DNA of 63,643 nt, counting the filler, from Choristocarpus tenellus KU-1152 (Eukaryota; Protista; Phaeophyceae): assembly GCA_964200185.2 (NCBI GenBank). It is 13 parts of 13 records of this genome, joined end to end, with 100 filler letters (N's around TTAATTAATTAA, not from the genome) between each part and the next. Parts side by side here need not be neighbours in the genome. Positions count along the whole stretch, not along the records: positions 50,038 to 59,120 come from CAXNAD020004005.1; 12 more parts are not named here. One strand, written 5' to 3'. Every line of letters starts with the position of its first letter. Position 1 is the first letter of the stretch. Of this stretch, positions 4,336 through 59,120 are shown one piece after another. The notes beneath the pieces are model-generated. The model saw only the letters and a program-made list of their open reading frames with translations. It was not told where the DNA came from and made no database searches. A program made the translations under genes and the position numbers.

Positions 4336-4589
4336 GAGTCAAAGTACCTTAGAGGGTAGAGCCGAATCCTTTTGAGGACCAAAATACAATGTTGCAATTT
4401 TGATGTAATTTTGACTATCGTGTTGTTAGGAAGCATCAATTATCCTTGTTGCAGGCATAACTTTTCATAATGTATCATTTTATCTACTCCGAAACATTTC
4501 AGAATAGGAAAATGTCATCAAAATATGAGAAGCCAAGCATCAAATGGACAAACAGGGCAAAACTCGTACCCTCTAAGATACGTTCGCTC
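4336..4589 (+). mobile_element. MITE family A, full copy
   Basis: Same TIRs and body as 3390-3650; TSD not preserved. Confidence 0.85.
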
Positions 4590-5249
4590 GCTGTAAAGTA
4601 AAACGGCATAACTTCTATTGGAAAAGGAGTGGCCACGAAAACGTTGGAATGTAGCTGTTGGTTGTCTAGAAAGACTGTTGGCAATCCTCATGCCACCTAA
4701 TTGTGGACTATTTTGTTGGCCCGCTTCACAGTTTTGCTATAAAAATAACATTTAAAAGAATCTTGGTTACGCTAAACCGAAGTCGAGAAAAATTTGATCG
4801 AGCTTCTGGTGAACGCCTTCAAAGCTTTGGACTATACGCTCCTTCCCATTACACTCGGCCTAGCGCATAACAAGAGGCAGTAAACGCACAGAAAACGGAC
4901 AACAGACACAACATTACGCAAGAGTCAACACTGAACCTTCAATCCTCAGCTTCAACATAACCAAAAAAACATTGTATGGTGGAGGAGGATGAACACAGCT
5001 GTGACCTATCCACCCAGTGGAGAGTAAACCAGGAAACCCTTTGCCGGAGAATGGTTTCAAAAATAAAATCGAAACTGTTTCAAACAAAGGTATACCCTGG
5101 AATTCTCATGTGGTTTAAGGTGGGGTAGAGTACACACATCATGAGCACCTTCTCTATGGTTCGGCAGACTCTCTTCCCTCTCCTATTGGGCTATCCACTA
5201 GCCTGCAAAATAACAGAAAAATGTGGCATGCACCAAGTGAACTCTAGCA

Positions 5250-5291
5250 GGCTCAAAGTATCTGGGAGGGAGTGGCAGCTGTCCATTTGGG
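5250..5291. mobile_element. MITE family B terminus, cut by contig end
   Basis: GGCTCAAAGTATCTGGGAGGGAGTGGCAGCTGTCCATTTGGG is a near-exact reverse complement of about 206-247. Confidence 0.8.
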
Positions 5292-5391
5292 NNNNNNNNN
5301 NNNNNNNNNNNNNNNNNNNNNNNNNNNNNNNNNNNTTAATTAATTAANNNNNNNNNNNNNNNNNNNNNNNNNNNNNNNNNNNNNNNNNNNN
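5292..5391. other. Artificial contig-joining linker (first of 12)
   Basis: 44 N + TTAATTAATTAA (stops in all six frames) + 44 N. Identical spacers at 8344, 11306, 16727, 19485, 26736, 30803, 35146, 41442, 44168, 49938 and 59121. Confidence 0.99.
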
Positions 5392-5586
5392 TTTGATGTA
5401 ATTTTGGCTATTGTGTCTGTTAGGAAGTGTCAATATCCTTCTTCTGGACACACCTTCTCATAACGTATACATTTTACCTACTCCGAAACATTTTGGAATA
5501 GGAAAATGTAATAAAAAACTCATGAGAATCCAAGCCCCAAATGGACAAACAGGGAAAAACTCATACCCTCTAAGATACTTTCACTC
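5392..5586 (+). mobile_element. MITE family A, 5'-truncated by contig start
   Basis: Matches the family A body and ends TACCCTCTAAGATACTTTCACTC. Confidence 0.85.
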
Positions 5587-6476
5587 AATCATACCACGGC
5601 AAGGCAACTACAGCTCTTCTGCAGAGAGTAACCACATATTTTGCAACACAAGTAATGCATTGACGGAAACTCAACCAGGGAAGTGTTTTTGTCCAACACT
5701 GGACCAGTCCTGGAACTTTACCAGAAGTCTCTAGCGTTATCAGGGATGTGAAAGGGTTGGAGTTTACTCAGGAGTGTCGAACAAATGTCACCGAAAAACT
5801 GATAGTGGTGTGATCTATTCATGGATTCGGCTAATATCGTAATTGACAGACCACATTCCATCATATCAACCCACCAACGATTCAATATTTGCCCAACCGG
5901 AGTCTCCTGTTTTTCGGAAAAATCAGAAGTCTATGCAGTTTTGGGCTACTTACCATTGCTAAGGGTTAAGCTTGATGGAAGAAGGGGCACGAGAAGATTG
6001 TCCCTCTTTGCTAGGTTCATACCCCTCTCTGTCTTATTCTACAACAGATAGTCAACATTAGTTTCGGAATGAGATTAAACAGTCAAAGTATCCATTTCTC
6101 TACTGCAAGTGGTTCGACTCTCTAAACTTAACACCAAGTAAGCTAATGCTTGTGGCATGTATGCCCTATTCAGGAATATACTGTGAAACAACCAAGTGTC
6201 ACGAAAGCTAACCCCCAAGCTTTCACCAAAGAACGTGTTTTTTTTCATCCTTTCCTCTCCACCCCAAAACACATAAAAGTGCACCACTACCAACAACAAT
6301 ACCTGCATACTAAAGACGCCCCAACTCTAGACACATACAATACTCCATACAACTTGCCAAAAACACACACTGGAGTAGATCTCTAATATAGTCCAGAAGA
6401 CCCCACCTTCTAAACTCGACCTGAACCATCTACCCTTGCCCTTTGTCAATAGTCCTCATGGAAGCGGTAGCCTCAC

Positions 6477-7100
6477 CTGAAAATCAGCCTTTCTAACCTC
6501 TTCCCCTAGCTGCCCGCCAGAGCTCTGGTTGCTGCTGCCCTGTCCCATTGACACGGTCCCTAACCCTGTTCTTCCTGTTACCTCCCCGCCCTGCCCAGCA
6601 TACACCTTGGTATGATTCGTCATCCCAGCCGTCACACTTGTCCCAACTATCCCAGTTACTCCTTCTGGTCCTTGCCACCCAACACTATTCCCAAGGACAG
6701 TAGCAGCAGCGGTAGCATCATCTGGGATGCTGGTATCCTGGCTGTTGCCACCTTTAGACAAAATGGTGCCCAAGGGTTTGTGGTCCTGTCCCTCCTCCTG
6801 AGTATCAAATGTTGAGGATTGTACAAGAGAAGCAGTCATTGGGGCAAAGTTCAAGGCTGACTCAACCTGACTCACCCCAACTGCTATGTTCGCCACTAAG
6901 GCAGAAGCTACATCTGTTGCAGGCCTAGCAGCAGTGTTGGAGGAGGAGTAAATGGAAGGTGAAGAACGTCGGAGATGGAGGTATTGGGTGTGGGAAGGAT
7001 CTCTGGGTAGGCCAGTGGGTAGCACCTTGTGAATGACCTGATCACCTAACTTTGGCATGAAGAAGGGAGAGGAGGGAGGGGGGTGGGGATATTGTACCAT
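6477..7100 (-). CDS. Probable internal exon of a low-complexity (S/T/G/A-rich) protein, unknown
   Basis: 214-aa open frame ending at a CAG|GTGAGG donor near 6476; acceptor unclear; no recognisable domain. Confidence 0.35.
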
Positions 7101-13890: not shown

Positions 13891-16675
13891 CTTTCACACA
13901 AGCACCAACTATTATTTCTATGATAACTTCATGATGGAGGCATAAATAAATATTATGTGACGTACCCACACCCAAGAAAGATATTATCTTGGAGGGGGAT
14001 ATTGAGTATTTGGAGGGTAATGAGCAGGGAAGCAAATATAAAATTGACGTAGTTGGTGGAACAGTATAACTGTGATATATACCAATAGTGGTATGGTACA
14101 TCGCTCGTACATTGTTAGTGGTATGTTTGTAGAAATGGCAGTGTGTGTGCTGTAGCGTCGTACCGATATGCTGATCTCCCCATACCTGTTCATGGATGGA
14201 AATTTCCGATTTATCCTCAGGCTATCACTGTGAAAGACGATTTGGTGCCTACATAATGCTTGGACACTTGTTTATCTTTTCTTCTACTACTGCAAAGAAC
14301 TTCTAAGACGGGTTAGCTGGGTTTCAGGCATGGGAACTGGAAGGGGTCAGGCAGAAGGTGGTCAAAGCCTAAATGCAGAAAGGGGATTAAATGAACCCCC
14401 TCTAAGATTGGGGTTGCTCCAAGACACACACTTCCTTGATTTAGGTTTTTTCTGGCACTATTGGTAGTTCAAAGGAGCGGGTGGTGGCTCATTGCAGGTA
14501 GCAGGCATTACATTGCTTCCTCCCCCGAAACTTGAAGAAACTCAACAGTTTCCGTCAGTGAGCAGGAGTACCTACAACAGTAAATCTTCAACACTCGTGA
14601 CCTCCATTTCCTTGCATGAAAACAAACATGTTGTTGACCCTGCCAACCACAATTTGCTTCCCACAACTCTCCATTATGCTTGCTTGTTGCCAGATGATTC
14701 GCCCAAGAATGTCTCTAGTCTTGAATCTCAACTACACTTACAATGACCAACAATGTTGAAATGAAGGGTTTTCACTTCTCACACACCACATACAACATGC
14801 CTTCATCTGGAGCGAGTAATGCCATCTAAGAGGGAGTGCAGTTGAGTTTCAAGGATCCCTACCACTGCCTTGTGATATACCGTGCATTTTTGAGCACTGT
14901 GGAGGGTGCTTTCAGCTAACGTTGTGTGCACAGATCATTTTTTTCTAGGACAGTCGCTCCCTTACAAGGAAGGTTAACTAACTGCATTTCAGTCATGGAT
15001 GGGCATGGTGTATATTGGACAAAACTGAAAAAAGCTTAAAACAAAAAACCGAGCATATATTCATTTATAGTTTTGTTTTTCGGAGTGTATGTTTGTTTGT
15101 GCTTATTATGCTGTTTGTACTCCTTCCACTCTCCTTAATTTCCATAATACTAGCGAAACTTACTCTGTATAAACTTGAAATGACCGTGTCTAACGCGGTG
15201 GTGTGCAACTGTGATCAAGAAGAGCACCCCACCGCAACACAGATGGGAAAGGATCGAAAGGAAGCAGTGCTCCTTGCAGGCACTTAGCAAAAGGAAAAAG
15301 GTTCTCCTATGGTGCTCAACTGTGTCAGAAGAACCCCTTCCTCCACCGTCCACCTTTCCTAGCCTTTGCCTTGTATATACTATACCATTACGCTGAATTA
15401 AAACTGGCAGACGAGCACACAATGTAGTCTAAAGTCCTCAAAACACAAAGCGAAAGATGCACATAAGCACAACACCATGCCAGATTGATCCTTATTCTAC
15501 CCTTGTCTCGCCAGGCTCCTCACCAGAAACAATCCTTAGTGCAGGACCTGGTGTAGAAGGGGCCGATTTTGTTCCTTAACAGACAGTTAAATGCCCTTCA
15601 ACATAGTTTTAAAGTTCGATATTTCAATTAGTTCCTATTTTACAAAGGTAGAACCTGATTTCGAATATTTTACGATATACACGGTACATAGTAGTGATGA
15701 TGACGCCTCGTTACTGTGGCGAATGCCAATGAATGCCAAGTTCAACATCCATCTTTCAAGTTCATCAACAAAGCACCGTCAGCTCATAAAAAAATAGACG
15801 TTACTTGTAAAATATGACCTTTAATTTGATGCCATTTTATTTCATACAAGTCCCCACACCAGAAACAACGCGCTTCGAAATATAGACGGTTTTTTCCTGC
15901 TGAACGCTAGAGTACTAATGTTCTTGCATACACGCCCGTGCTGGCTACCTCCCCAGCATATGAACGATTGAGATAGGGCACAAAGCTAGAAGGTGGCATG
16001 TTGGGGGAAATATGCACAGGATAGATCGTTCTGTTGCGTATCAGTAACTTCCTCAGCTCAGCATCAGTTCAACAGTGTGCAGGGTATAGGCTATAGATAC
16101 ACAAGACTGTATCAGGTTCCCTTTTTTTTGTGGTTACCCTAAAATGTTTGAGGAATCCAACTTAGTCTATCTACTCTATGCCGGTCACTATGAAGCCCCC
16201 CAAAAAGGCCTTCCCAACGAGTTTTTTTTTCTAATCCGCACACACTGTTCTAATTAGTGCTCGAACAGAGGGAATAGTTCAGCAGTAAAAATGGTAGCAT
16301 TGTTGGTACAGGGCAGAAGTGTAGCGGGTGACATTCTGTTGTCATACAGCAACATTTGTGGACTACAGGAAGGACAGCAGCGAGGTAGACTTCAAGGTCT
16401 GTGTTAGGCAACTAACAGGTCTTGTCCAACAAAAATGCACTGAATATTGTACATTCATCAATTCTATTCATTTACATATATGCAGGACAACATGCCATTT
16501 TTTCAGTTTTGCGAATCGCAACAGTTCAATCACCTTCGGTTCGATCAATTGGGATGAGCCAACAAATGAACTATGTGGCAAACCCACACATTCATCACAA
16601 CAAGGTGACACTACTCTCAACGCACTACACATACATTTCATTGCCTATGACTTGGGATCTGCCTGGTGAGGCCCT

Positions 16676-16700
16676 GGGTCAAGGTATCTGGGGGGGGTGG
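16676..16700. mobile_element. MITE family B-type terminus
   Basis: GGGTCAAGGTATCTGGGGGGGGTGG close to the contig end. Confidence 0.55.
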
Positions 16701-16826
16701 TTTGAAGGGGGAGTACGTTTCAGTCANNNNNNNNNNNNNNNNNNNNNNNNNNNNNNNNNNNNNNNNNNNNTTAATTAATTAANNNNNNNNNNNNNNNNNN
16801 NNNNNNNNNNNNNNNNNNNNNNNNNN

Positions 16827-19299
16827 GGTTCACAGCGGGCGGGGCTGTGATGGCGGCGGCGCAGAAGTTGAGAGCAACAACGGATCGGCATCAGATGGCC
16901 GTGAGAAAGAATACGAGGGAGGGCACGAACACCAAGGAGGGGATGGAGATGAGGGAGGGGACGAACACAAAGGAGGGGATGGAGATGAGGGAGGGGACGA
17001 ACACAAAGGAGGGGACGAACACAAAGGAGGGGACGAAGACGAGGGAGGGAACGGACTGCCAGACAGGGAGGATACGGGCGAAGGGGGTTCTGTCGGCAGT
17101 CTTCCTGGTGCGGAAGAAGAACAAATGGCCATGGAGGGTGGAACGCGGGCGTTTGCTGTACTGAATGCAATCCCCCACCTACGTCTCGGTGAGTAATGTA
17201 GTTGTAATGGTGCACACGAGGATGGAGTGTAATTAATAGCGTAAGATTAGTTTCCATCTAATCCCTCGAATGGATAGATACGTTGTATCTTTTCAGCGGC
17301 GCATGCCATTGAATCCATGGTATGTTGCGGGGTCCCTCTATGTGCGGCGCTGCGGTCGCTACCCCCACGTCTCATTATTTGCCACTGTCCGATTGTGTGT
17401 TAATGCATGTACATCACTGACTGTTGTATCTCACCTGTACTACTTCGTGCTGTTTTGTGCGGCCAATTTCGTGGTCCTTCGTAACCGTGGATCCTCACGT
17501 TGCGTTGTTGTGCCCAATTAATGATCTGGAAAAATTCTATACTGTCTGTTTAATGTTCTGATTCGATGACACGCGCGACAGGTATTCATGCCCAAAGTGC
17601 TCCATCACATATATGGGCGAATGTGCCTACGCGGAGATTATAGACGACGAGAGGCACAAGGATCGATTATGTATCAATTGCCCCATGGCACAGGAGGGCA
17701 GTGAAGGGTCTGGATCGGTGGGGAACGAAACGGCGGGTCAGAGCAGGGGCGGGGGCAAGGGTAAGGGTCATGCAAGGAGCGCAGGCGGGTCACCCACGAC
17801 GCAAAGCCTTTTACATCCCCCCTCACACAGCGAAACGGCCGACATGGAGAAGTGCATGTGGGTCTTGGCGTGGTTGCACATTATACGGACACACAAGTCG
17901 TCTCTGCGTGTTTGTTTTCACGTTGGTTTGCACATAGGTCTTGGCTGCTTGTACATCATGTGGATTTCTCGTCCTTTGTGCCTTGGATGTGTCGCTTTTT
18001 TGGAGGTTTCCATGGGCCATGGAACTTAGTGTTTTGACGTCTACCCTCCTTCCATGAGATGTATCTGATGAGTCTGGCGTTGTGGAGGGTACGGCTTGAC
18101 ATTTTGGAGATGCCGTGGAAATATTGTCAGGACCTCACTTAATGAAAAGATTGCCTGCACCGTAGCTTACTACGCTGTCCTTCTTGTCGTGCTGTCTACT
18201 GTGTCGTGTGTCATGATATCCAAGCAGGAGTGAGAACACTGCATTACACGACCTTTGCCCTCTCGACCCTACGGTACCCCTTAGACGACCTGAAAGAGTT
18301 CGCCTTCTGCAATGCGCCAAAGCTCGCCATAGTGTCCATTGCCGCCGAGCCAAGACTCCTCAACGACGAAGAGGCGACCAACACACACCTGCGCGAGGTG
18401 CTTCCGTGCTTGCGGCTGAAGATGCATCCTCAGGGCACCAACGCACTCATTGTGCCCCACCCGTGTAAAGCGCAATTACACCGCCTAGGCGGTGAGTTGC
18501 AGAGTTCGCCTGTGCTGGAATACGGGGTATATTGTGGAAGACTGATCGATGCGCCATGACCATTATCATTCCGTCCGTGTGCTGATCGAATATTGTGCGA
18601 CCGTTCAGGAGATGCGGATTAGGTTGTGTGTATTCCTTTTTCACTTTCCCCATGTTGTTTCATGTCCTTCGTACCTTCTACTTCTTTTTGTGTCTCTTGC
18701 TCTTTCCTCCGGGTCCTTCATAGTTCTTTGTTTCATTGTCCGCAAATCGCATGCTGGTGTTACTCGTCTTCACTACTTTATTTTTGCCATATTTACTTCT
18801 ATTATTACTTAATTTCCTATTGTTTGCATTTTTTGCATTGGTTATTTGCCTTGCGTTCCACACTCATTGTACTATTATAATGTTAGTGGTATGAGGTTTC
18901 ATGAATCCCTACGATAACTACTTGTGTGATGTCACTGTCAAGTTTGACGCATGCCGGACCCACACGCTCGCTCCCGCCTTCTATTCATTCTGAGGCTCTT
19001 ATGGCATCGAAGGTGGGCTTGATTGTGGAGGATCATCCCCTAACCCTAATATACAAGACGAGGGGGGGGGGGCGACCTCAATTAGGCACAGATAACCATC
19101 TCAGATGTTGTCAGGACATGATTATTCTCGTGCACAACGATGGGACAATGTTCACATGCAATAAGCGAGTAACCATCGACGACATCTTTGGCCACGGGCG
19201 TGATGCATCTCCTCCGGTACTCCAAACCATGTTGGACGTCGAGTACAAAGGTGCTGCAACGGACATCCCCATGAGGGCCCTCCACTTCCTCATTAACAG
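16827..19299 (+). pseudogene. Middle exons of a repeated gene: GGDE acidic repeat, PHD-like finger, N6A/N4C DNA-methyltransferase-like domain
   Basis: Exon 16827-17188 (EGGDEHKGGDGDEGGDEHK...). Exon from 17582 (YSCPKCSITYMGECA...LCINCP). Exon about 18229-18491 (LREVLPCLRLKMHPQGTNALIV). Exon about 18995-19299 (GLIVEDHPLTLIYK...DMIILVH...FTCN...IPMRALHFLINR|GT). The following intron is homologous to 47474-47589. Confidence 0.55.
16915..17050 (+). repeat. Coding minisatellite (GAGGGGACGAACACAAAG / GAGGGGATGGAGATGAGG units)
   Basis: 18-bp-based tandem units encoding GGDEHK and GGDGDE. Confidence 0.8.
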
Positions 19300-49937: not shown

Positions 49938-50299
49938 NNNNNNNNNNNNNNNNNNNNNNNNNNNNNNNNNNNNNNNNNNNNTTAATTAATTAANNNNNNN
50001 NNNNNNNNNNNNNNNNNNNNNNNNNNNNNNNNNNNNNGTGGTGAACTTCAAAGTCCATTTCTTTTTCTCATGACCCCCCCCCCGCCACTACCTAGAACAG
50101 AGATAAAAGAGCTTTTACTCTCATGAATCTATCGCACACTTCTAAATGTGGTTAATTGTGCGTTCAAGCCCCTCCACACCCCTGGGTTGTAGCCCTCAGA
50201 TTTTTTTTGTCAGAAGTGACTTGGAGTCGTCCTCCCTAGAAGCATTGCAATTGTTTTGGTTTCAAGTCTTCTCGCAACTCTGCTTCCCTACCTTTTCAG

Positions 50300-51160
50300 C
50301 ATCAAAAAACGGCCATTACTTGGCCTGACATGACGCGTCTTATTGAAGTGCATGGACGGCTGGGGCTCTACAAGTGTGTGGCAGAGGAAAGTGGCTGCCC
50401 CTATGCCTATGACTGTGAGATACTGCCCTCAGCCTTCCCAACAAAGCTGGAGAAAGCCCTGGAGGGAGGAGAGAATGTCCACCTCGAGGAAATACCGAGG
50501 TGAATTCCGTCTGCAAGCAAATGCCTGCCTTCCCTCAAATATTTTCTCAGTTGCCCCAACTGCAGAGGTCTGCCCACCTCACATGACCTGCAATGCAACA
50601 AACTCAAAGACAGTCACTCACCACCCCTCCATCCAACCATGATATCAGGTGCCCCAACTGCGGCAGCCCATCCTCCCCGATGGCCCTCCTCTTTGATGAA
50701 GACTACGATAGCCACAGCTTCTACAACTTTGACAACGCCCAAATTTGGATGTCAGAGGCAGACGCCATTGTGTTTGTGGGGACATCCTTTGCGGTGACCC
50801 TCACTTGTAAGAAATGTAGGGAGTATTTAGTTTTGAGTGGCCTCTGTGGGCTGTCAAGTCTCTCCCCATTAAGTGAACCTCAGCCCCAAGTTATGGTTGT
50901 CTTCGTTTTCTTACACTTATGTGCTTTCCACTCAACACCCAACAACCCCTTTGATACTACCCTCCTATTCCTGCCATGTTGTGTGTGTCCCCTGCTTTCA
51001 ATACTGTACCGAAAAGCCTTAGCTGTAAAGGAGGCCAAGCGAAGGAAGATACCAGTTTTTGACTTCAATATATCTGCCTCCTTATCTTCCTCAAAGACCC
51101 TGCTTGCCAAGACTGTTGTTGGCCCTGCAGAGGAAACACTGCCAGAGCTTGCGGCTCGGG
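50300..51160 (+). CDS. Sir2/sirtuin NAD-dependent deacylase domain (N-terminal half of a fusion gene; 5' exons missing)
   Basis: Exons 50300-50499 (HQKT...RLIEVHGRLGLYKC...GC...EIPR), 50649-50806 (CPNCG..PMALLFDE...ADAIVFVGTSFAV) and from 51017 (LAVKEAKRRKIPVFDFN...GPAEETLPEL). The catalytic HG, four zinc Cys, LFxE and GTS motifs are all in the expected order. Confidence 0.9.
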
Positions 51161-51534
51161 CGGGGTCAACAGTGAGCCCCTTCAAAGGGGGAAAAGCAAC
51201 AGAGTCAGTGATGACAGCATCAGTATCTGTCTGCACTAAATCAGTCGGTGGGGTGGGGTGTGGTGAGGATGGAATGGAAGGGACTCGTACTGTCAGTGAG
51301 AATGGAGAAAGGAATTGTATCAGTGAGTCAGAGGGAGAGGGTGCGGGCAAGAGGCCCGGAAAAACATGTGTGGATAAATTGTTGCCAGGATCCACCAAGT
51401 TCATGAGAACCTCAGACTGGAGTGCTGTTCCAGAGGTCATTGAGCCCATGGAGCACAGTGGCACAGATGGAGGTGATTCAGAGGGAGAAATAGGGCAGGA
51501 GGCAGGAGGAGGAAGAACTGCAGGAAATGAGGGG

Positions 51535-54500
51535 ATGGGATTCACACTGGACCCCATCCTGACTTGCCCTTTGAGCCAGACGCAGGTGCAAGTGGAGCTC
51601 TCTGAGGCGTTCCTACGAAAGATATACCCAGATGGGCAGGTGCAGTGGAATGGACTTCTCCAAACGTTGTAGGAAGAGGTTGGGTGAAAATGAAATCTTG
51701 AGGGTGATGCAGTGAGCACATTTTTCATGAGGAACTGGGAAATCGCCGCCTCACACACTGATTCGTCTTGTGGAAGAGCCTCCTCAGTTTACTAAAGGCG
51801 TGTATTGGCTCATGCATGATAGGTTTTTGGTTATCAACCGTTGTGAATTTCATTCTTGTTCATATTGGTATAATATCCAGTCTGTGGATACGTCCACACA
51901 CACACACACACACACACACAACCATCAAGAATAGGTACCTGTGTCATTAACCCCACCCCCACTTCAACAATTTTGCTTCTCATCACCACACCCCATCACC
52001 ATTACCATTTCCAGGCCTTGCCTTCCTTAACCCTGGCTGCTGCTCTACATCAACCTGCTAATTCCTCAACCAACCATCCTGTCAGGTTGAGGACCAAATT
52101 GAAACCCTGTGGCAGGAACAGCTCTCCAAAAACCCCTCCATATTCAATGCCTCCAAGTTCCGACTTGCGGGATACTCCTACTCCGCAGTGAGAACCGCCG
52201 CTCCCACTTCCACCCCTGCCCCCGCTTCAGTTCTGGCATCCGATTGCAATGATCAGGACACTCCAGTCCTTTCCCATCCCGAGGGACACTTCCCTCCTGA
52301 AACAGAAAAGGGCAGCGGCAATGCTCATGAGGGGTCTAGCTTGCTGACACTTCATCTCGGTCTCACAGACTACCGATCCTTCCGTGGAACGAACTGGTCC
52401 CCCAATGGTCACCAACTTGCTCTCGATGGAACTCGGGACTACTCGGACCCCGGAGCGTACCTGTCAAACAAACTGGGGGTCTCAGCCCTGGTGGAGACTG
52501 CTGACAGGTTCTTGCTGGCACTGAGAAGGAGTGGGATGGTAGCAGAGGGGCAAGGGCTGATTGGAGCACCAGGTGGCCACCCAGAACCCGAGGCAAGAGG
52601 GACTTTTCCTTGGGGAGGAGAGGGGAAAGATTGTAAGAGCCAAAGCGTGTAAAAGGGTAGGTTTCTTGCGTTAAAACAGTTGTCTGTAGTGTATATGACT
52701 GTGAAACATGTGTCCGGAGCAAGGATATTGACACTTGGTAATGAGCACCGTAGCCAAAATTCATCAAAATCGCATCGTTGGATTTTGGATCCCAAATGGA
52801 CTGGACCCTACCCTCTTAAATGCTTTGGGTCTAACCTGGTCATGGGCGACACAGTAAAAGGGGGGGAGGGGAAGGGCTTTTGTGGAAAGGGGAGCAATCA
52901 TGCACCTAGTGCCTATTTAATTTTTTCCGCAATTTTTTTTCTTTGTAATATTTTCCTTTTCCTGCCCAGCTCTGTTCTTCCTGTTGCCAGCCCGGATTGC
53001 TACTATTGGAGGGCCTGAGTGAGGATGGTTTTGTGTGGGAGTGGTATAGTGTCACTGCTGGTGTAGATTGCAGCGAGTAGCACTTTTTTAGATTGGATCA
53101 ACACACCAGTGTGCTGTGCCAAACCTCCTTGCCATGTTGCTGGCTGCTCATGTACCGTAAAAGCACTGCCTCTACTTCAGTAAAGTGTAGCTGCTCGACT
53201 GTACCCACCCTCTCCTAACCCCTTACCATAATTTGTGATGCCTCCCTCGTCATTGACAAAGACACTTAAGCTCCAAGTGTAGTTAGACTAAGGATCCTCC
53301 CCGCCCGTTCTCTTAACCCTTGTGTATTGAAAAACTGTCGTCATGAGAAGAACATCCTCCCCTCCCCCCACCCCCCTACCTACCCATCGTTCCATTGGTA
53401 ATGCATGTCCTATTATTAATGTTGTATGTACATACATCTGCTTGTGAAATAAATGACCTGAAGAACAGAAGCTAGGATTGTCCCCTTCAATCCTTAGAGG
53501 ACTGTCAAGAAAAGAGGGTGAGGGGGGAGAGGACCGCCGTCGCCTGGAGGCAGAGGCGGTAAGGGAACTGTTTGAAAGTGCCAGGCAGGAGGCAGTTGAT
53601 GAGACCAACGTGACCCCTTCTGAACTCTCAGAGCCACTGCTGATGGGGATCACCCGTCAATGCAATAGCAATGGAACTCCGACTGCAGGTGACACAGTGC
53701 GGGGAGGAGGGGAAGGGAACAGGAGGATACCTGTCACTTGAGGCTGTTTTTGCGTTCAAGGGTCCAAGTTTAGGCACCAGAAACACTAAACTTGTCTTGT
53801 GTGCACCCAGTCCCTCTGGAAGGTTTCAGGTTAGGAATGTTGCCCAAGGGTTGTGAAATGTCGATGTTATGTGGTTGAGCAGGTGGCCGAGATAGAGGTT
53901 GTAGAGACGTTTGGATGTTCAAGCATCTGAAGGTAATCTAGGGTTTGTGAACAATGCCTGTTTGTGAGGATCGGAGGGAGTTTAGTTCGATTTTGACCAA
54001 AATGGCCCCAGCCTTAGTTTGTTTTGACTAGTCCTGTCCTTCATCGCTGTTGAATATTGCAATACACCTGTACCACTGGACCCCCTTTCCTCTCACTCTT
54101 CCTTTTTCCTGCCGCTGCAGGGAGTCAGCTAAGAGGTTCTTTCAGGATTTGAACCCACAAACCTCTGATCTTGTCAAATATTTAGATACCACCCCACAGC
54201 GCAAGACAATCTTTTTGCATGATGAACCACCCCAGTGGTGGAGCAGTATCTCGACATTTGATACTCGCCTTCTGATCAATATCACGGTCCAATGATGACT
54301 GAGCCCTCGGACAACCTACTCTACCGAACAACCTGCTTTTCAGTCTGAGACGGGTTAGCACCAACCCCATCGTAACATCACACAAAAACGCCACTCCAAG
54401 GCGTGTGCGATGACTCTTCCAGCTACCAGTGGCAAAAAGCCCCCAACATTGCCTTCATTCTATCTGCCCCCCAAAATCTCAACCATCTTACCCTGTGGCA

Positions 54501-54879
54501 CTCTCCCTTGAGCCTCCCAGAAAGTTGTGTGCCGTGCCAATGCTCATCTCTGGCGCTTTGATTACATTTTTTTGCTGCATCCTCTGCCGTTGTCTCAGCT
54601 TTCCTCATGCAGTGCTCGCTGGGATCTGTCGAGGTGCATGGTCTGTACAAGCGTGGTGCCAAGGAAGCCTTTGAGAGCACTTCACTCCACACCCTTCCCA
54701 GCTCCGAGCTCCTAGCCGAGGGACTGGCGTGGTTCACCCGTCAAAATGTGGAAGCCACCCCAGCACTGAAGGGTGCTGTGGAGCTATGGAGGAGGCACTG
54801 CCTGGAGCCGGTGCAGCCTGCTCTCCAACCAAATTGCGTTGCGGGAGGAGCCAACGGAATGGGACTGAGGCAAAACTAG
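51535..54879 (+). CDS. NUDT22: NUDT22-like Nudix hydrolase domain (C-terminal half of the same fusion gene)
   Basis: End of exon 51017-51639, then exons 52086-52592 (IETLWQEQLSKNPSIFNASKFRL...LHLGLTDYRSFRGTNW...LGVSALVETAD...LRRS...PGGHPEPE), 53469-53688 (RELFESARQEAVDETNV...LSEPLLMGI) and 54599-54879 (AFLMQCS...LY...EAFESTSL...TPALKGAVEL...stop). All phases match. Confidence 0.9.
52637..52831 (-). mobile_element. Shorter, diverged family A-related MITE inside a Nudix intron
   Basis: GAGCCAAAGCGTGTAAAAGGGTAG ... CTACCCTCTTAAATGCTTTGGGTC; shares the CAAGGATATTGACAC and GCCAAAATT.CATCAAAATCGCA body motifs. Confidence 0.7.
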
Positions 54880-57552
54880 TGTCTTTACTTCTTCTTCTTG
54901 TCTGTAGTAGACTTAGGGTTAGGGTTGGTGGCTGTGTATGTTCCTGTGCTGTGAAGTAGGGGGGGGAGGGGCTTGTTTGTTTGTGGAAAGGTGGGTAATG
55001 GCTAGAGGAGGAAATATATGTGAGTGAGTGCTTCTTATATGTACCACTGTAGCAGTAGGAAAATGCTGCGAAGGTGTATTATCATGGTGCTCTTTGCAGC
55101 GCAATCGTTTTTTTTATGTTTTTGGTGTCAGATTGTTTCTTCCTGTGTCGTTTTTTTAAGAACATAAAAACACTTTTTGCTGTATTTATTGAAGGCGGTT
55201 TTTGATAGGGAGGAGAGAACACATGTAGCCATATAGTTTGGTCTGCGTTTGTTTTGCTTGTTTTGTTTTTAATGGAGGTAGGGAAAGCTGAAGAGTGGCA
55301 CTTGTTCGTGTCAAAATAGTACAAATAAATTGGATGTCTGTGTAGCTTGTTTTGGGGGTGTGTGTGTTGCGTGTGTGTCATTTAGTGATCATGTAAGAGA
55401 GCCCATTTTACTCAAGCGAAGAGGTGAAGTGCTGGAGATGGTGAAGTAGGCTGTCCAATAGTTGCAGGTTTGTGGGTGATTGAAGAGTCGAATAGTGGGG
55501 ATGGTGAAAGGAAGTTTGGGTTTGGGTTACCTATGTGTTTCCTGTCTGTATTTCCCCTTTGGTAGGATGGGATAGGTTTTTTGTTAGGTTGATAAGGGAA
55601 TCTCAGTCTGTGGATTCTGAAATCCGATCACTCGGATGTTTGAGCCTTGAGTAACCTTTTGTGTTTTGCTTTGGGGCAGGGAGAGGAGGAGGTGGCATTT
55701 CAGATCCGTGTGTGTTGTTATGTGTCATAGCTGACAACGCAGCAGGAGCCTGAAATGCGTGAAAGTGTCTCTCACTGTCACTGTTTGAAAACTGTTGATG
55801 GGTGGGGTATGCTTGACCAACAGTTGGTGAATCCGGGCGGGAAGGTCATCTTGCTGTTGCAAGTGTCAACAGGTACTCATATTTTTGCATTGCTTTTGTT
55901 GGTGTATTAAATAAGTTTGGTTATTTCCGGGGAGATACACGTTTGAGAGAAGCAACTAGCTGGCAGAAGACGCCTGTGCTGTGGCGTGTGCAGTTGTGGA
56001 TAGATGTATGGATGAGTGAGATGGTTAAAAACCGGAAGGTAGTTAAGTTGGTCGTTAGTACAGAGCTCTTGCTCCAGGTGATATGTTTTTCCTCTTGTGG
56101 GAGAGTGATGTTGTTGATGTGCCGGAGTGGTTCATTGATAGATAGGAATATAAAAACGAAATGAGATGCAGGGGAACCTGAAGCTGGATGGTGTTACAAT
56201 ATCATTCCTTCCTCTGTTTTTGCTTGTTCAGTTTTCTCTCCTCTCGCTGTAGCCTCCACCCCCTTGCCCACTCAGTCCAATGCACTGACTAAGATAAAAA
56301 GTAAACTTCGTGCACACCGGCTCACAATCTTCTGAAGCATTTTTCACTAGTGTTACTCAAAGACGTATACTTATTGGGTATAAAGCAGCTACGTTGGCAT
56401 GGACTCCCTCTTTCATTGCTGAGGTAGTCAAATGTAGCTGGTTGGTGCGAGGTTTAAATTGTTCTTTGCTCTCTTAGGCTGTGAGCAACGTTAGACTATT
56501 CTCCTCCATCTAATCTGTTTCGTCCACAAACAAACAGCTTCCTATCCCTCTCAGATCTCCACTTTTCAAGCAATGGTGCCTTGGCTTTTTTTGCGTGAGT
56601 GTGCTTTTCCCACATAAGGTTTGTGGGTGTGACCGTGTTTAGGTTTTTATCACTTTGCAGCAGGGAGTAGTATGTCCCTAATTTGAGCTCTTTCTGCCAG
56701 CCAGAGGAGTGAAGGGGATGATGATCCAATATATTGTACAGTGCTGCGTATACTAACTCTGTTAAGAAAACCTGGACATTTTATTACAGCATAGGAGCGC
56801 TAACGTACAGTACACAACAACAATAATATCTTGAGGAGGGAGCAGGTCCCACTGAAAATAGGCCAGCACTGAACCTATGCCCTGTTAACGATGTAGGAGA
56901 TGAGCCTTGGTTGGGGGTCATCTCTTGTTCCATCAGAGTGCATTGCGATACACTCCAGGATATGTAGCAATGGTCAATCGAACCTCCTACTACACTTCCT
57001 CACTATCCTTTTGTCAAGAGAGGCTGACCGCCTCGTCCTGCACTTTGTTGTACGTCATTGAATGTAGCAAGAATTTGCAAGTATAAAAAATACACTGTAT
57101 AGTTCAGATTAGTAGTAGTAGTAGTGGCAGTCATGTGTTCCGATACCGTTTACAGTTTTGTTCTCGTGGGGGTGCACTCTACCTTCTATGCCCAAATTAT
57201 TATTGGGTCAGGAGAGGTATGCAATAATATCAATATGAAATGAACGCTTATGCCAAGGAGGGTTGAAGCTTTGTATGCAAGGATGTACTAACTCCAGTGA
57301 ACGGGAAATATATCCCGATCAAAGAAAAAAACGCAGGGGAATAACTCCGTCGCAATTTTGATGGTCACAACCTCAAAAGGTACAAAAATGAAGTGGTTGA
57401 CTGAATTCCCCGCAAAAAACTGGTCTGCGGTAGGCCCTGCCAATATACGGTGCGTTTGGTCCTACCGAAAAAAAATGCAAGATTCTCGGACATCTTTTTA
57501 ACGCCTTTTGTAGACTTTCTGTGAACACACACACAGGTGACCCACACAGCAA

Positions 57553-58260
57553 TATGGACCACAACGGTGAGAAAAGGAAAGCCACCGAGGCCACTCCACC
57601 CCCTGGATCTACCCTCGGCACCTTCTCTGTCGAGAGGCGACAGAAAAATAAGTACCGTGTGAGACTCAGTGCGATGTTAGGTGACGAAAAAGTGCGTGTA
57701 ATGTGGCGCAGCAGCATGATCAAATCGCGAAATGGACCACGCAACCGCGACATTGACGCTGAGAGAAGATGCATTGAAATCATTACCACATAAACGTGGT
57801 TGGATCTTCAACCGACACGGAGCACTACTGGGCAGTCTCTGCCACCTCAGGAGAGCAGGAAGAGAGCGGCAGGTGCATCATCAGGTGCTATAGTGACGAA
57901 GTCTGTGGGGAAGCCTGGTCCTGGCGGGCGAAGGGAGAACCAGGGTGGCCGGCCGAAGGGAAGATTGGGGAGGAGAGCAGTGCGACTGTGTGCCATTGCG
58001 CTCAGGAAACGCCTAAGCCAGAACCCGGGGGTAGAATATCGTAGTAATTGACGAAAAAGATACGCGATGGTCACAGAGAAAACTGTGAATAGATGGGAGC
58101 GAAAACTATGGGTAGATGGGAAAAAGACTTCCTAGCTAAGGACCACATCAAGGTGTCGGAGCAAGGGCGCTATGAGAGGCGTTTCGTTCTGGGCCTCGAC
58201 GAGGACATCCTTGCCGAGGTCAAAGAGTGGGTGCGCTAACACACAGGATGAAAGAAAGGG
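57553..58260 (+). mobile_element. N-terminal part of a Tc1-like transposase pseudogene
   Basis: Broken frame ending TVNRWE...SEQGRYERRFVLGLDEDILAEVKEWVR, like the S..G.H....L.DED......WLR motif upstream of the DDE core in the clade seen at 39945-40790. Confidence 0.55.
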
Positions 58261-59084
58261 TGTGCAGGCTTTTTTCCCACCTAAACCCTATACTTCAGTC
58301 AAGTAATAGTGCATCTGTTGCGACTCTTGGTGACCAACAATCCAGGGTTCGAACCCCAATGTGAGCGCTCTTTCTGCAAAAAAAGAAAAAAATGGCGAAA
58401 GAAAAACGAAACCCGTAATCTGGGCGGCCTTGTGACGGTCATCACAATTATGCTTTTATTTTTTAAATCCGATTTCTTCATGAAAGTTACGATGGGACAA
58501 CCCCATGTACCACTATAACCAAGGAGTCAGTTGCTTGACCACAGGGTCCCCATGTCATTTTTTTTTACAACTTTTTTTTGGTGATAAGCAAATACAGTCT
58601 TCATATATATGTAGTAGGAATATTTTCTGACTCTTAATTACAATACTTTTGCTTACCACCTTGGATTTTTCCAAGTAAATAATGAGATACCACGATGATA
58701 TTCGTTCTATCAATGGGAGACTTGGCTCAAGGAGAAAGGGGAAGATTGAGATGGCCACTTGGGAAGTGGATGCGACTACTACTTCCGAAAACATTATTAG
58801 TAGTAGTGGGACGATGACCCATGTTGCTCCACATGAACGAGCTAATATTTGACAAAATAGAGCCAACAGTGTTACCCAGCTTAATCTGTGACCGATCATC
58901 ACACAAGTCATGGAACTTACATGTATGTCCTGGTGGAACGGTCTCAATACTTGACACTTTCTTTGTGCCAGTACATGTTCACTATTACAACTATTTTTGC
59001 TTTCTATGCAGTAGTAGTAGTAGTAATGGTCAAGCTCGCGCTAAGCGTGTCATAGCGCACATTTTCTTGAAGAGGGATCAAGGT

Positions 59085-59120
59085 GGGTCAAAGTATCTGG
59101 GGGGGGGGGGGGGGGGGGGG
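59085..59120. mobile_element. MITE family B terminus at contig end
   Basis: GGGTCAAAGTATCT followed by a poly-G run. Confidence 0.75.

Follow-up and report, generated by a model that had tools for sequence, protein, structure and literature searches.

The sirtuin–NUDT22 gene of Choristocarpus tenellus

Does one gene of the brown alga Choristocarpus tenellus encode a sirtuin joined in frame to a NUDT22-type Nudix hydrolase and, if it does, what might the two enzymes do for one another? The gene in question lies on a 9,083-bp contig, CAXNAD020004005.1, which forms positions 50038–59120 of the window analysed here (a stretch of 63,643 nucleotides, filler included, made of 13 joined parts of this genome; all positions below count along it, and all features are on the + strand). 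An examination of the DNA without database searches, called the sequence-only reading below, had proposed such an in-frame fusion, and a single spliced RNA and the conservation of the arrangement in other algae now leave us very little doubt that the fusion is real: one gene encodes a sirtuin that is followed by a disordered linker and then, at the C-terminus, by a whole Nudix hydrolase of the NUDT22 type. Of the sirtuin domain, the contig encodes the C-terminal half only.

Exons and introns were delimited by three-frame translation and inspection of splice sites. The gene has six exons (50299–50499, 50649–50806, 51017–51639, 52086–52592, 53469–53688 and 54599–54879, here A to F) separated by introns of 149, 210, 446, 876 and 910 nt, four of which are GT-AG and one GC-AG (52593–53468), with phases 2, 1, 0, 0 and 1. 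Concatenated by script, the exons form a single open frame of 662 codons that ends at the stop codon 54877–54879. The public protein CAM9470057.1 (P0001, 652 amino acids) uses the same six exons and holds the translation of each in order; comparisons at the level of the whole protein were made with P0001. Exon number and phases are those of the sequence-only reading, and they agree with the sequence, with the exons of P0001 and with the RNA joints described below.

Exon A (50299–50499) is the first on the contig, further upstream exons lying off it; its translation corresponds to P0001 residues 1–56 and carries the EVHG motif with the sirtuin catalytic His (50345–50356) and the YKC motif with the first zinc-site Cys (50369–50377). 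After intron 1 (50500–50648; 149 nt, GT-AG, phase 2), exon B (50649–50806) encodes the CPNCG zinc ribbon (50650–50664), the sequence LLFDEDYDSH (50686–50715) in the place of the usual sirtuin FGE loop, and VGTS (50776–50787); these exon B motifs are invariant across nine aligned fused proteins. Intron 2 (50807–51016; 210 nt, GT-AG, phase 1) separates it from exon C (51017–51639), in which the two enzymes meet. The first part of exon C (51017–51165) is the sirtuin C-terminus, with PVFDFN (51052–51069) and GPAEETLPEL, and through the orthologue P0005 it aligns to the C-terminal NAD-binding (NAD, nicotinamide adenine dinucleotide) segment of SIRT5. Its middle (51166–51540) is a stop-free, low-complexity linker of 125 amino acids rich in Gly, Glu, Ser and Thr (25, 15, 13 and 11 residues, respectively), and its end (51541–51639) is the NUDT22 N-terminus, with DPILTCPL (51550–51573) followed by QVQVELS, which corresponds approximately to human NUDT22 from residue 11 onward (alignment to 5lor residues 37–99, a numbering that includes an N-terminal tag). 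The claim that exon C runs without a stop from the sirtuin motifs through the linker into NUDT22 holds: its 207 in-frame codons include no stop, while the two other frames have 9 and 10. Within the 125 linker codons the count is 0 against 5 and 8, and the probability of a stop-free linker by chance is about 0.002.

Intron 3 (51640–52085; 446 nt, GT-AG, phase 0) leads to exon D (52086–52592), a 100% match to P0001 residues 318–486, which encodes the N-terminal domain of NUDT22 and the first part of the Nudix domain and ends in PGGHPEPE (52569–52592). Intron 4 (52593–53468; 876 nt, phase 0) is the GC-AG intron (GAG/GCAAGA ... ACAG/AAG). Exon E (53469–53688) carries the Nudix-box helix ELFESARQEAVDETN (53565–53609), whose acidic residues align with human QEICDE, and after intron 5 (53689–54598; 910 nt, GT-AG, phase 1) exon F (54599–54879) encodes the C-terminal part of NUDT22, with EAFEST at 54664–54681, and the stop codon.

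Transcript and assembly evidence

Three public sequencing runs, all from one study, were used; X1 and X2 are DNA-like, with unspliced contigs of up to 245 kb, and X3 is RNA-like. One X3 contig (1,831 nt, depth 44.8) covers 50299–50497, 50647–50806, 51017–51636 and 52083–52592 with no mismatch or gap, so joining exons A to D across exon C; after allowing the slack stated for the joints, introns 1, 2 and 3 are precisely removed in it. Separate X3 contigs contain the joint of intron 4 (52590>53467; with its slack of 2 nt the ends are GC..AG) and that of intron 5 (53685>54596, cut +3). The RNA mapping that the sequence-only reading had called for thus finds exon C spliced on both sides, and a sirtuin that splices out before about 51500 is not seen. 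Nor is there any sign of misassembly in the linker, where the RNA contig and the unspliced DNA contigs of X1 and X2 are identical. The RNA evidence consists of assembled contigs, which carry no transcript-end information. The ATG at 51535, four codons before the NUDT22 N-terminal motif, is not conserved among the orthologues.

The contig edge cuts off the 5' part of the gene. The RNA contig contains the acceptor 50298/50299 and the junction 50499>50649 of exon A, and it continues upstream of 50299 with 342 nt that are absent from the contig sequence, while an X1 genomic contig extends about 3.4 kb upstream of 50038. The P0001 model starts at ATG 50330, an internal Met only eight residues before the catalytic His, because the contig ends, and it is without the Rossmann (NAD-binding) half of the sirtuin. 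The 342 nt and the 17 codons that exon A has ahead of the catalytic His would together amount to about 131 residues, close to the 132 that precede this His in P0005.

At the other end, the 3' untranslated region occupies 54880–55400 and beyond in the RNA (55400 being the limit of the mapping). An X3 contig of 1,676 nt covers 54596–55400 and continues past it, which suggests that this region exceeds 0.5 kb and may reach about 1.4 kb.

We note that the 210 nt of intron 2 are a multiple of three without an in-frame stop, the open reading frame 50587–51669 running through it uninterrupted; a transcript that retains this intron therefore still encodes the whole fusion, with a 70-amino acid insert in the sirtuin domain. 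Some X3 RNA depth is present within intron 2.

The sirtuin half

Against the Pfam SIR2 profile (PF02146) P0001 scores 18.7 bits, below the cut-off of 24, and covers only profile positions 97–178, whereas its orthologues P0005, P0006 and P0031 score 71.7–88.8 bits over positions 1–179. The profile comparison that the sequence-only reading had suggested thus falls short for the C. tenellus protein itself and succeeds for its full-length orthologues, through which the sirtuin identity is established: P0001 residues 3–161 match the sirtuin half of P0005 at 3e-44. The six exon translations searched singly gave no Pfam match, these pieces being too short or too divergent, and a PDB sequence search with the 361-amino acid open frame 50587–51669 found no sirtuin. 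The low score of P0001 and the lack of a sirtuin match from the single exons and the 361-residue frame arise because the N-terminal half of the sirtuin is off the contig.

The catalytic-His HG motif and the four-Cys zinc module (YKC, GC, CPNC) are present in C. tenellus and invariant in the nine-protein alignment. The GAGxS and QNID motifs, which are found in the orthologues P0005, P0152, P0031, P0155 and P0156, would be encoded upstream of 50038 in the C. tenellus gene. Among the fused proteins GAGxSxxSGIPxFRG, QNID, the catalytic HG, the four Cys, GTS and FDFN are all conserved, and the first four of these are shared with the class III sirtuins SIRT5, CobB and Sir2Af. The closest solved structure to the orthologue sirtuin half is SIRT5 (E 1e-16), followed by the archaeal Sir2Af proteins, and the best NCBIfam models are CobB-type deacylases. 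The algal proteins differ from class III sirtuins in that their first Cys pair is CX4-6C and not CXXC, LLFDExYxSH stands in place of the FGE loop, and their scores (90–130 bits) are far below the NCBIfam equivalog cut-offs (243–320). In a quick tree of sirtuin domains they and their unfused orthologues form one well-separated clade (Shimodaira–Hasegawa-like approximate likelihood ratio test support 99) on a long stem that is specific to stramenopiles. The Tyr/Arg acyl pocket of SIRT5, which we take to be Tyr102/Arg105, is not recognisable in the HMMER alignment, where a gapped region places Phe/Pro of P0005 at these positions. By sequence the sirtuin half is nearest to class III (SIRT5/CobB), but we do not assign it as a member.

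The NUDT22 half

Exon D alone matches human NUDT22 with an E value of 2.4e-23, and P0001 residues 290–652 match it with 1.8e-45 from about residue 11 to the C-terminus (chain residues 37–99 and 105–321). The whole two-domain fold of the human protein (PDB 5LOR, 5LF9, 5LOU) is thus present in C. tenellus, including GGHPEP and the acidic helix (ELFESARQEAVDE in C. tenellus and ELFSSVLQEICDE in human NUDT22). The atypical Nudix box (GGHPEP ... ELF..QE..DE) is common to both, and neither has a Pfam NUDIX match: PF00293 matched neither P0001 nor any other fused protein at E ≤0.01, nor did it match the exons. Human NUDT22 has no Nudix box of the conventional kind (PMC5688067). The algal domain differs from it in being covalently attached behind a sirtuin, in carrying extra low-complexity inserts (for example at P0001 residues ~350–395), and in that its substrate is a predicted one.

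In 65 unfused NUDT22 proteins 27 columns are at least 85% conserved, and 24 of them are kept in at least eight of the nine fused proteins. All Glu positions among these conserved columns are retained in the fused proteins, including those of GGHPEP and the E/E/E of the Nudix helix. The columns of PGGHPEPE and of the Nudix-helix motif, at least 92% conserved in the 65 unfused proteins, are identical in all nine fused ones.

The AlphaFold model of the full-length orthologue P0005 has a mean confidence (predicted local distance difference test, pLDDT) of 91.9 and a predicted template modelling score (pTM) of 0.71. Its C-terminal half superimposes on human NUDT22 (5LOR/5LF9) with a template modelling score (TM) of 0.86–0.88 at 35–36% identity, and its N-terminal half on Sir2Af2/SIRT5 with a TM of 0.72–0.82.

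Distribution and evolution of the fusion

The 150 best NUDT22 relatives were surveyed, and a second search and local domain mapping were added. Several long proteins among these 150 have SIR2 ahead of NUDT22, and the same architecture is found in other stramenopile algae, where the sequence-only reading had proposed to look for it. Fused proteins are encoded by Phaeothamnion confervicola (P0004), Chrysoparadoxa australica (P0031), Ectocarpus sp. (P0157) and Nannochloropsis/Microchloropsis (P0155, P0156 and P0199; UniProt A0A4D9CSB5 and W7U2V3), and by further assemblies and metagenomes of environmental algae (P0005, P0152, P0154, P0161/P0162 and P0180). At loci L001, L002/L003 and L004/L005 the fusion is one uninterrupted intronless open reading frame and is therefore independent of any splice call. 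Catalytic residues are retained in both halves of the fused proteins, and the linkers, which are of low complexity, range from 7 to 187 amino acids among orthologues. The architecture is conserved across several classes of ochrophyte algae, and the combination of a conserved domain order with a tether whose length is free to vary suggests that selection has favoured co-expression and proximity over a rigid interface.

In the sirtuin tree the fused forms are concentrated in a subclade of 97% support, in the Nannochloropsis pair and in P0152. The sirtuin orthologues of Triparma (a bolidophyte) and of a MAST-4-like stramenopile have no NUDT22 within 10 kb, and those of diatoms have no NUDT22 domain in the same protein. 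The fused domains cluster in a quick tree of NUDT22 domains, in which three changes are needed and the well-supported branches force only one; a single origin of the fused NUDT22 domains may be compatible with this tree.

At locus L009 of an environmental alga (4505–6810) the gene call splits the two halves into separate genes. The upstream "sirtuin" frame already includes the N-terminal motif of NUDT22, and a 146-nt GT-AG intron of phase 0 (5528–5673) would join both frames, so this locus is likely a fusion concealed by prokaryote-style gene calling.

Other domain arrangements were seen among the relatives. Three proteins of 618–690 amino acids (P0067, P0153 and P0143) have two tandem NUDT22 modules and no sirtuin. 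Of the more distant relatives of the sirtuin clade, P0186 and P0187 carry PF06094 (GGACT/AIG2-like) and P0191 carries PF03253 (urea transporter). P0116 (1,059 amino acids) combines ALS2CR8, Asparaginase_2 and a C-terminal NUDT22 match, and is probably a merged gene model from an animal genome.

Possible coupling of the two enzymes

With catalytic signatures kept in both halves, a bifunctional enzyme, as the sequence-only reading had suggested, is the natural reading of the sequence. The deacylation that sirtuins drive with NAD+ yields O-acyl-ADP-ribose (ADP, adenosine diphosphate). The fused protein would be a tethered two-enzyme unit, in which the sirtuin half would perform NAD+-dependent lysine deacylation and release nicotinamide and O-acyl-ADP-ribose, and the NUDT22 half, held nearby at 1:1 stoichiometry, would cleave the pyrophosphate of O-acyl-ADP-ribose or of ADP-ribose to give adenosine monophosphate and a ribose-5-phosphate derivative. 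An inhibitory, reactive or signalling by-product would thereby be removed at its source. We favour such clearance of the sirtuin product by the NUDT22 half tentatively, by analogy with known systems.

The closest analogy in logic is the macrodomain-SirTM fusions (fungal Mfs1, and the bacterial SirTM-macrodomain operons), in which a sirtuin and an enzyme that processes ADP-ribose derivatives are likewise joined in one polypeptide (PMC4518038). They differ in that their partner is a macrodomain and is placed first, and in that SirTMs are ADP-ribosyltransferases of a different sirtuin class; Pfam found no macrodomain family in the fused algal proteins. A precedent in trans is the yeast Nudix enzyme Ysa1, which is reported to control the level of O-acetyl-ADP-ribose (PMC4004948). 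Control of O-acetyl-ADP-ribose or ADP-ribose by Ysa1 and NUDT5 is the chemistry proposed here for the fused protein, but these are separate proteins of another Nudix subfamily with a canonical Nudix box, and they are not reported to occur fused to a sirtuin.

Several observations weigh against product clearance. Human NUDT22 is reported to be a UDP-glucose hydrolase (UDP, uridine diphosphate), which turns UDP-glucose into uridine monophosphate and glucose-1-phosphate, and within the family the hydrolysis of UDP-glucose and UDP-galactose is known for the human enzyme only (PMC10101856); it had no clear substrate in a screen of 52 compounds in which NUDT5 and NUDT14 cleaved ADP-ribose (PMC5688067). 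The family core that is kept in the fused NUDT22 domains argues for the usual substrate of the family rather than a new one, and the long variable linkers speak against a rigid channel. The coupling is deduced from predicted enzyme activities of the fused proteins, and an extra internal start that gives a stand-alone NUDT22 may be compatible with the assembled RNA contigs. In the P0005 model the pTM of 0.71 leaves the relative position of the domains unfixed; contact prediction between residues 1–290 and 299–605 gave scores of 0.49, 0.01 and 0.01, which amount to no verdict and are used neither for nor against binding.

A real possibility, if not a likely one, is a NUDT22 half that works as an ordinary hydrolase of UDP-glucose and UDP-galactose. 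The fusion would then tie NAD+-dependent deacylation, and with it NAD+ status, to the turnover of UDP-sugars, which in these algae would supply the storage of beta-1,3-glucan, the building of cell walls and pyrimidine salvage. Such a link might consist in co-regulation, in co-localisation or in the hydrolase being auto-deacylated. The human enzymology just cited favours this explanation, as do the fused domains, which keep 24 of the 27 columns conserved in the family and resemble human NUDT22 in sequence (35–36% identity) and fold (TM 0.86–0.88), and the variability and flexibility of the linkers. On the other side, no connection of UDP-sugars with the chemistry of sirtuins is known to us, and none came out of the literature search. 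The fusion partners of sirtuins are, moreover, usually ADP-ribose-processing modules (PMC4518038).

A "Rosetta stone" extension of product clearance, in which NUDT22 enzymes generally, the unfused animal ones included, would be dedicated partners of SIRT5/CobB-like sirtuins, strikes us as doubtful. If it were true, NUDT22 proteins would process O-acyl-ADP-ribose or a related NAD-derived nucleotide-sugar, and UDP-glucose hydrolysis would be a partial or side activity.

It is quite unlikely that the protein is a writer-eraser pair, with a sirtuin that acts mainly as a protein ADP-ribosyltransferase and a Nudix half that trims or reverses protein-linked ADP-ribose to phosphoribose. The macrodomain-SirTM proteins provide a precedent for fusing a sirtuin to an eraser (PMC4518038). 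The atypical substrate loops of the algal sirtuins (FDE for FGE, and GTSFAVT for GTSxxVxP) and the absence of an evident SIRT5 Tyr/Arg pair would fit such a role, but these sirtuins retain the canonical catalytic His and a core like that of CobB/SIRT5. We know of no reported activity of NUDT22 on protein ADP-ribose.

A non-catalytic NUDT22 half that serves as a ligand sensor to regulate the sirtuin is very unlikely; parallels to it are DBC1, with its inactive Nudix domain, in the case of SIRT1, and TRPM2, with its NUDT9H domain. A Nudix-like regulator of sirtuins has indeed been proposed (Anantharaman and Aravind 2008, as cited in PMC5389931), but neither GGHPEP nor the acidic residues that bind metal vary among the nine fused proteins, which would be unexpected in a degenerate sensor domain.

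Finally, it is scarcely credible that there is no true fusion, and that two neighbouring genes were merged by prediction or read-through, or the linker misassembled: assembled RNA contigs do fall short of proving that single molecules span the whole gene, the three runs do come from one study, and ATG 51535 does lie suitably close to the NUDT22 motif, but we reject this on the frame that is stop-free from the sirtuin C-terminus to the splice between exons C and D, the spliced RNA contig that crosses both sides of exon C without differences, the identical DNA contigs, the uninterrupted intronless frames in unrelated assemblies and the lack of conservation of the internal Met.

Other features of the contig

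Intron 3 contains a (CA)n microsatellite at about 51897–51922, where the DNA contigs break; positions 51886–51931 were skipped as a repeat in the contig mapping. Intron 4 contains a high-copy element at 52688–52833, over which the summed contig depth in X1 is ~15,000–18,000 against ~16 in the flanking DNA; its depth is similarly high in X2 and X3. Most copies are 90–95% alike, and many are without roughly 52737–52805. The element has no Rfam match, tRNA match or inverted repeat, and internal repeats of intron 4 that would explain it were not found; it is probably a dispersed short repeat similar to a short interspersed nuclear element or a miniature inverted-repeat transposable element. An Rfam scan of the contig returned only SCARNA7, at 23.5 bits against a threshold of 65, which we took as a chance match, and a tRNA scan of the contig found none. 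The open reading frames downstream of the gene (55085–58947) have no significant Pfam match.

Novelty and significance

A full-text literature search that included surveys of sirtuin evolution and of algal acetylation, with most subscription journals outside its coverage, returned no description of a sirtuin–NUDT22 architecture. The novelty that the sequence-only reading had claimed stands as regards publications and not as regards databases, since fused proteins are already public for at least eight other organisms, without a name or as "transcriptional sir2 family". In our view the fusion brings two known enzyme families together in a conserved arrangement that had not been described, and it is not a system of a new kind. 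The analysis also shows that the edge of its contig truncates the public Choristocarpus protein model N-terminally.

Sirtuins and NUDT22 have both been studied intensively in humans, and to our knowledge no report links the two functionally; within the human Nudix family NUDT22 is the outlier, and its biological role is only starting to emerge. That several algal classes have retained the fusion, apparently with both active sites intact, is strong evidence from genomes that in one lineage at least the two activities belong with each other. For the biology of these algae, it would mark an NAD+-linked regulator in organisms in which protein acylation and storage glucans derived from UDP-glucose are central.

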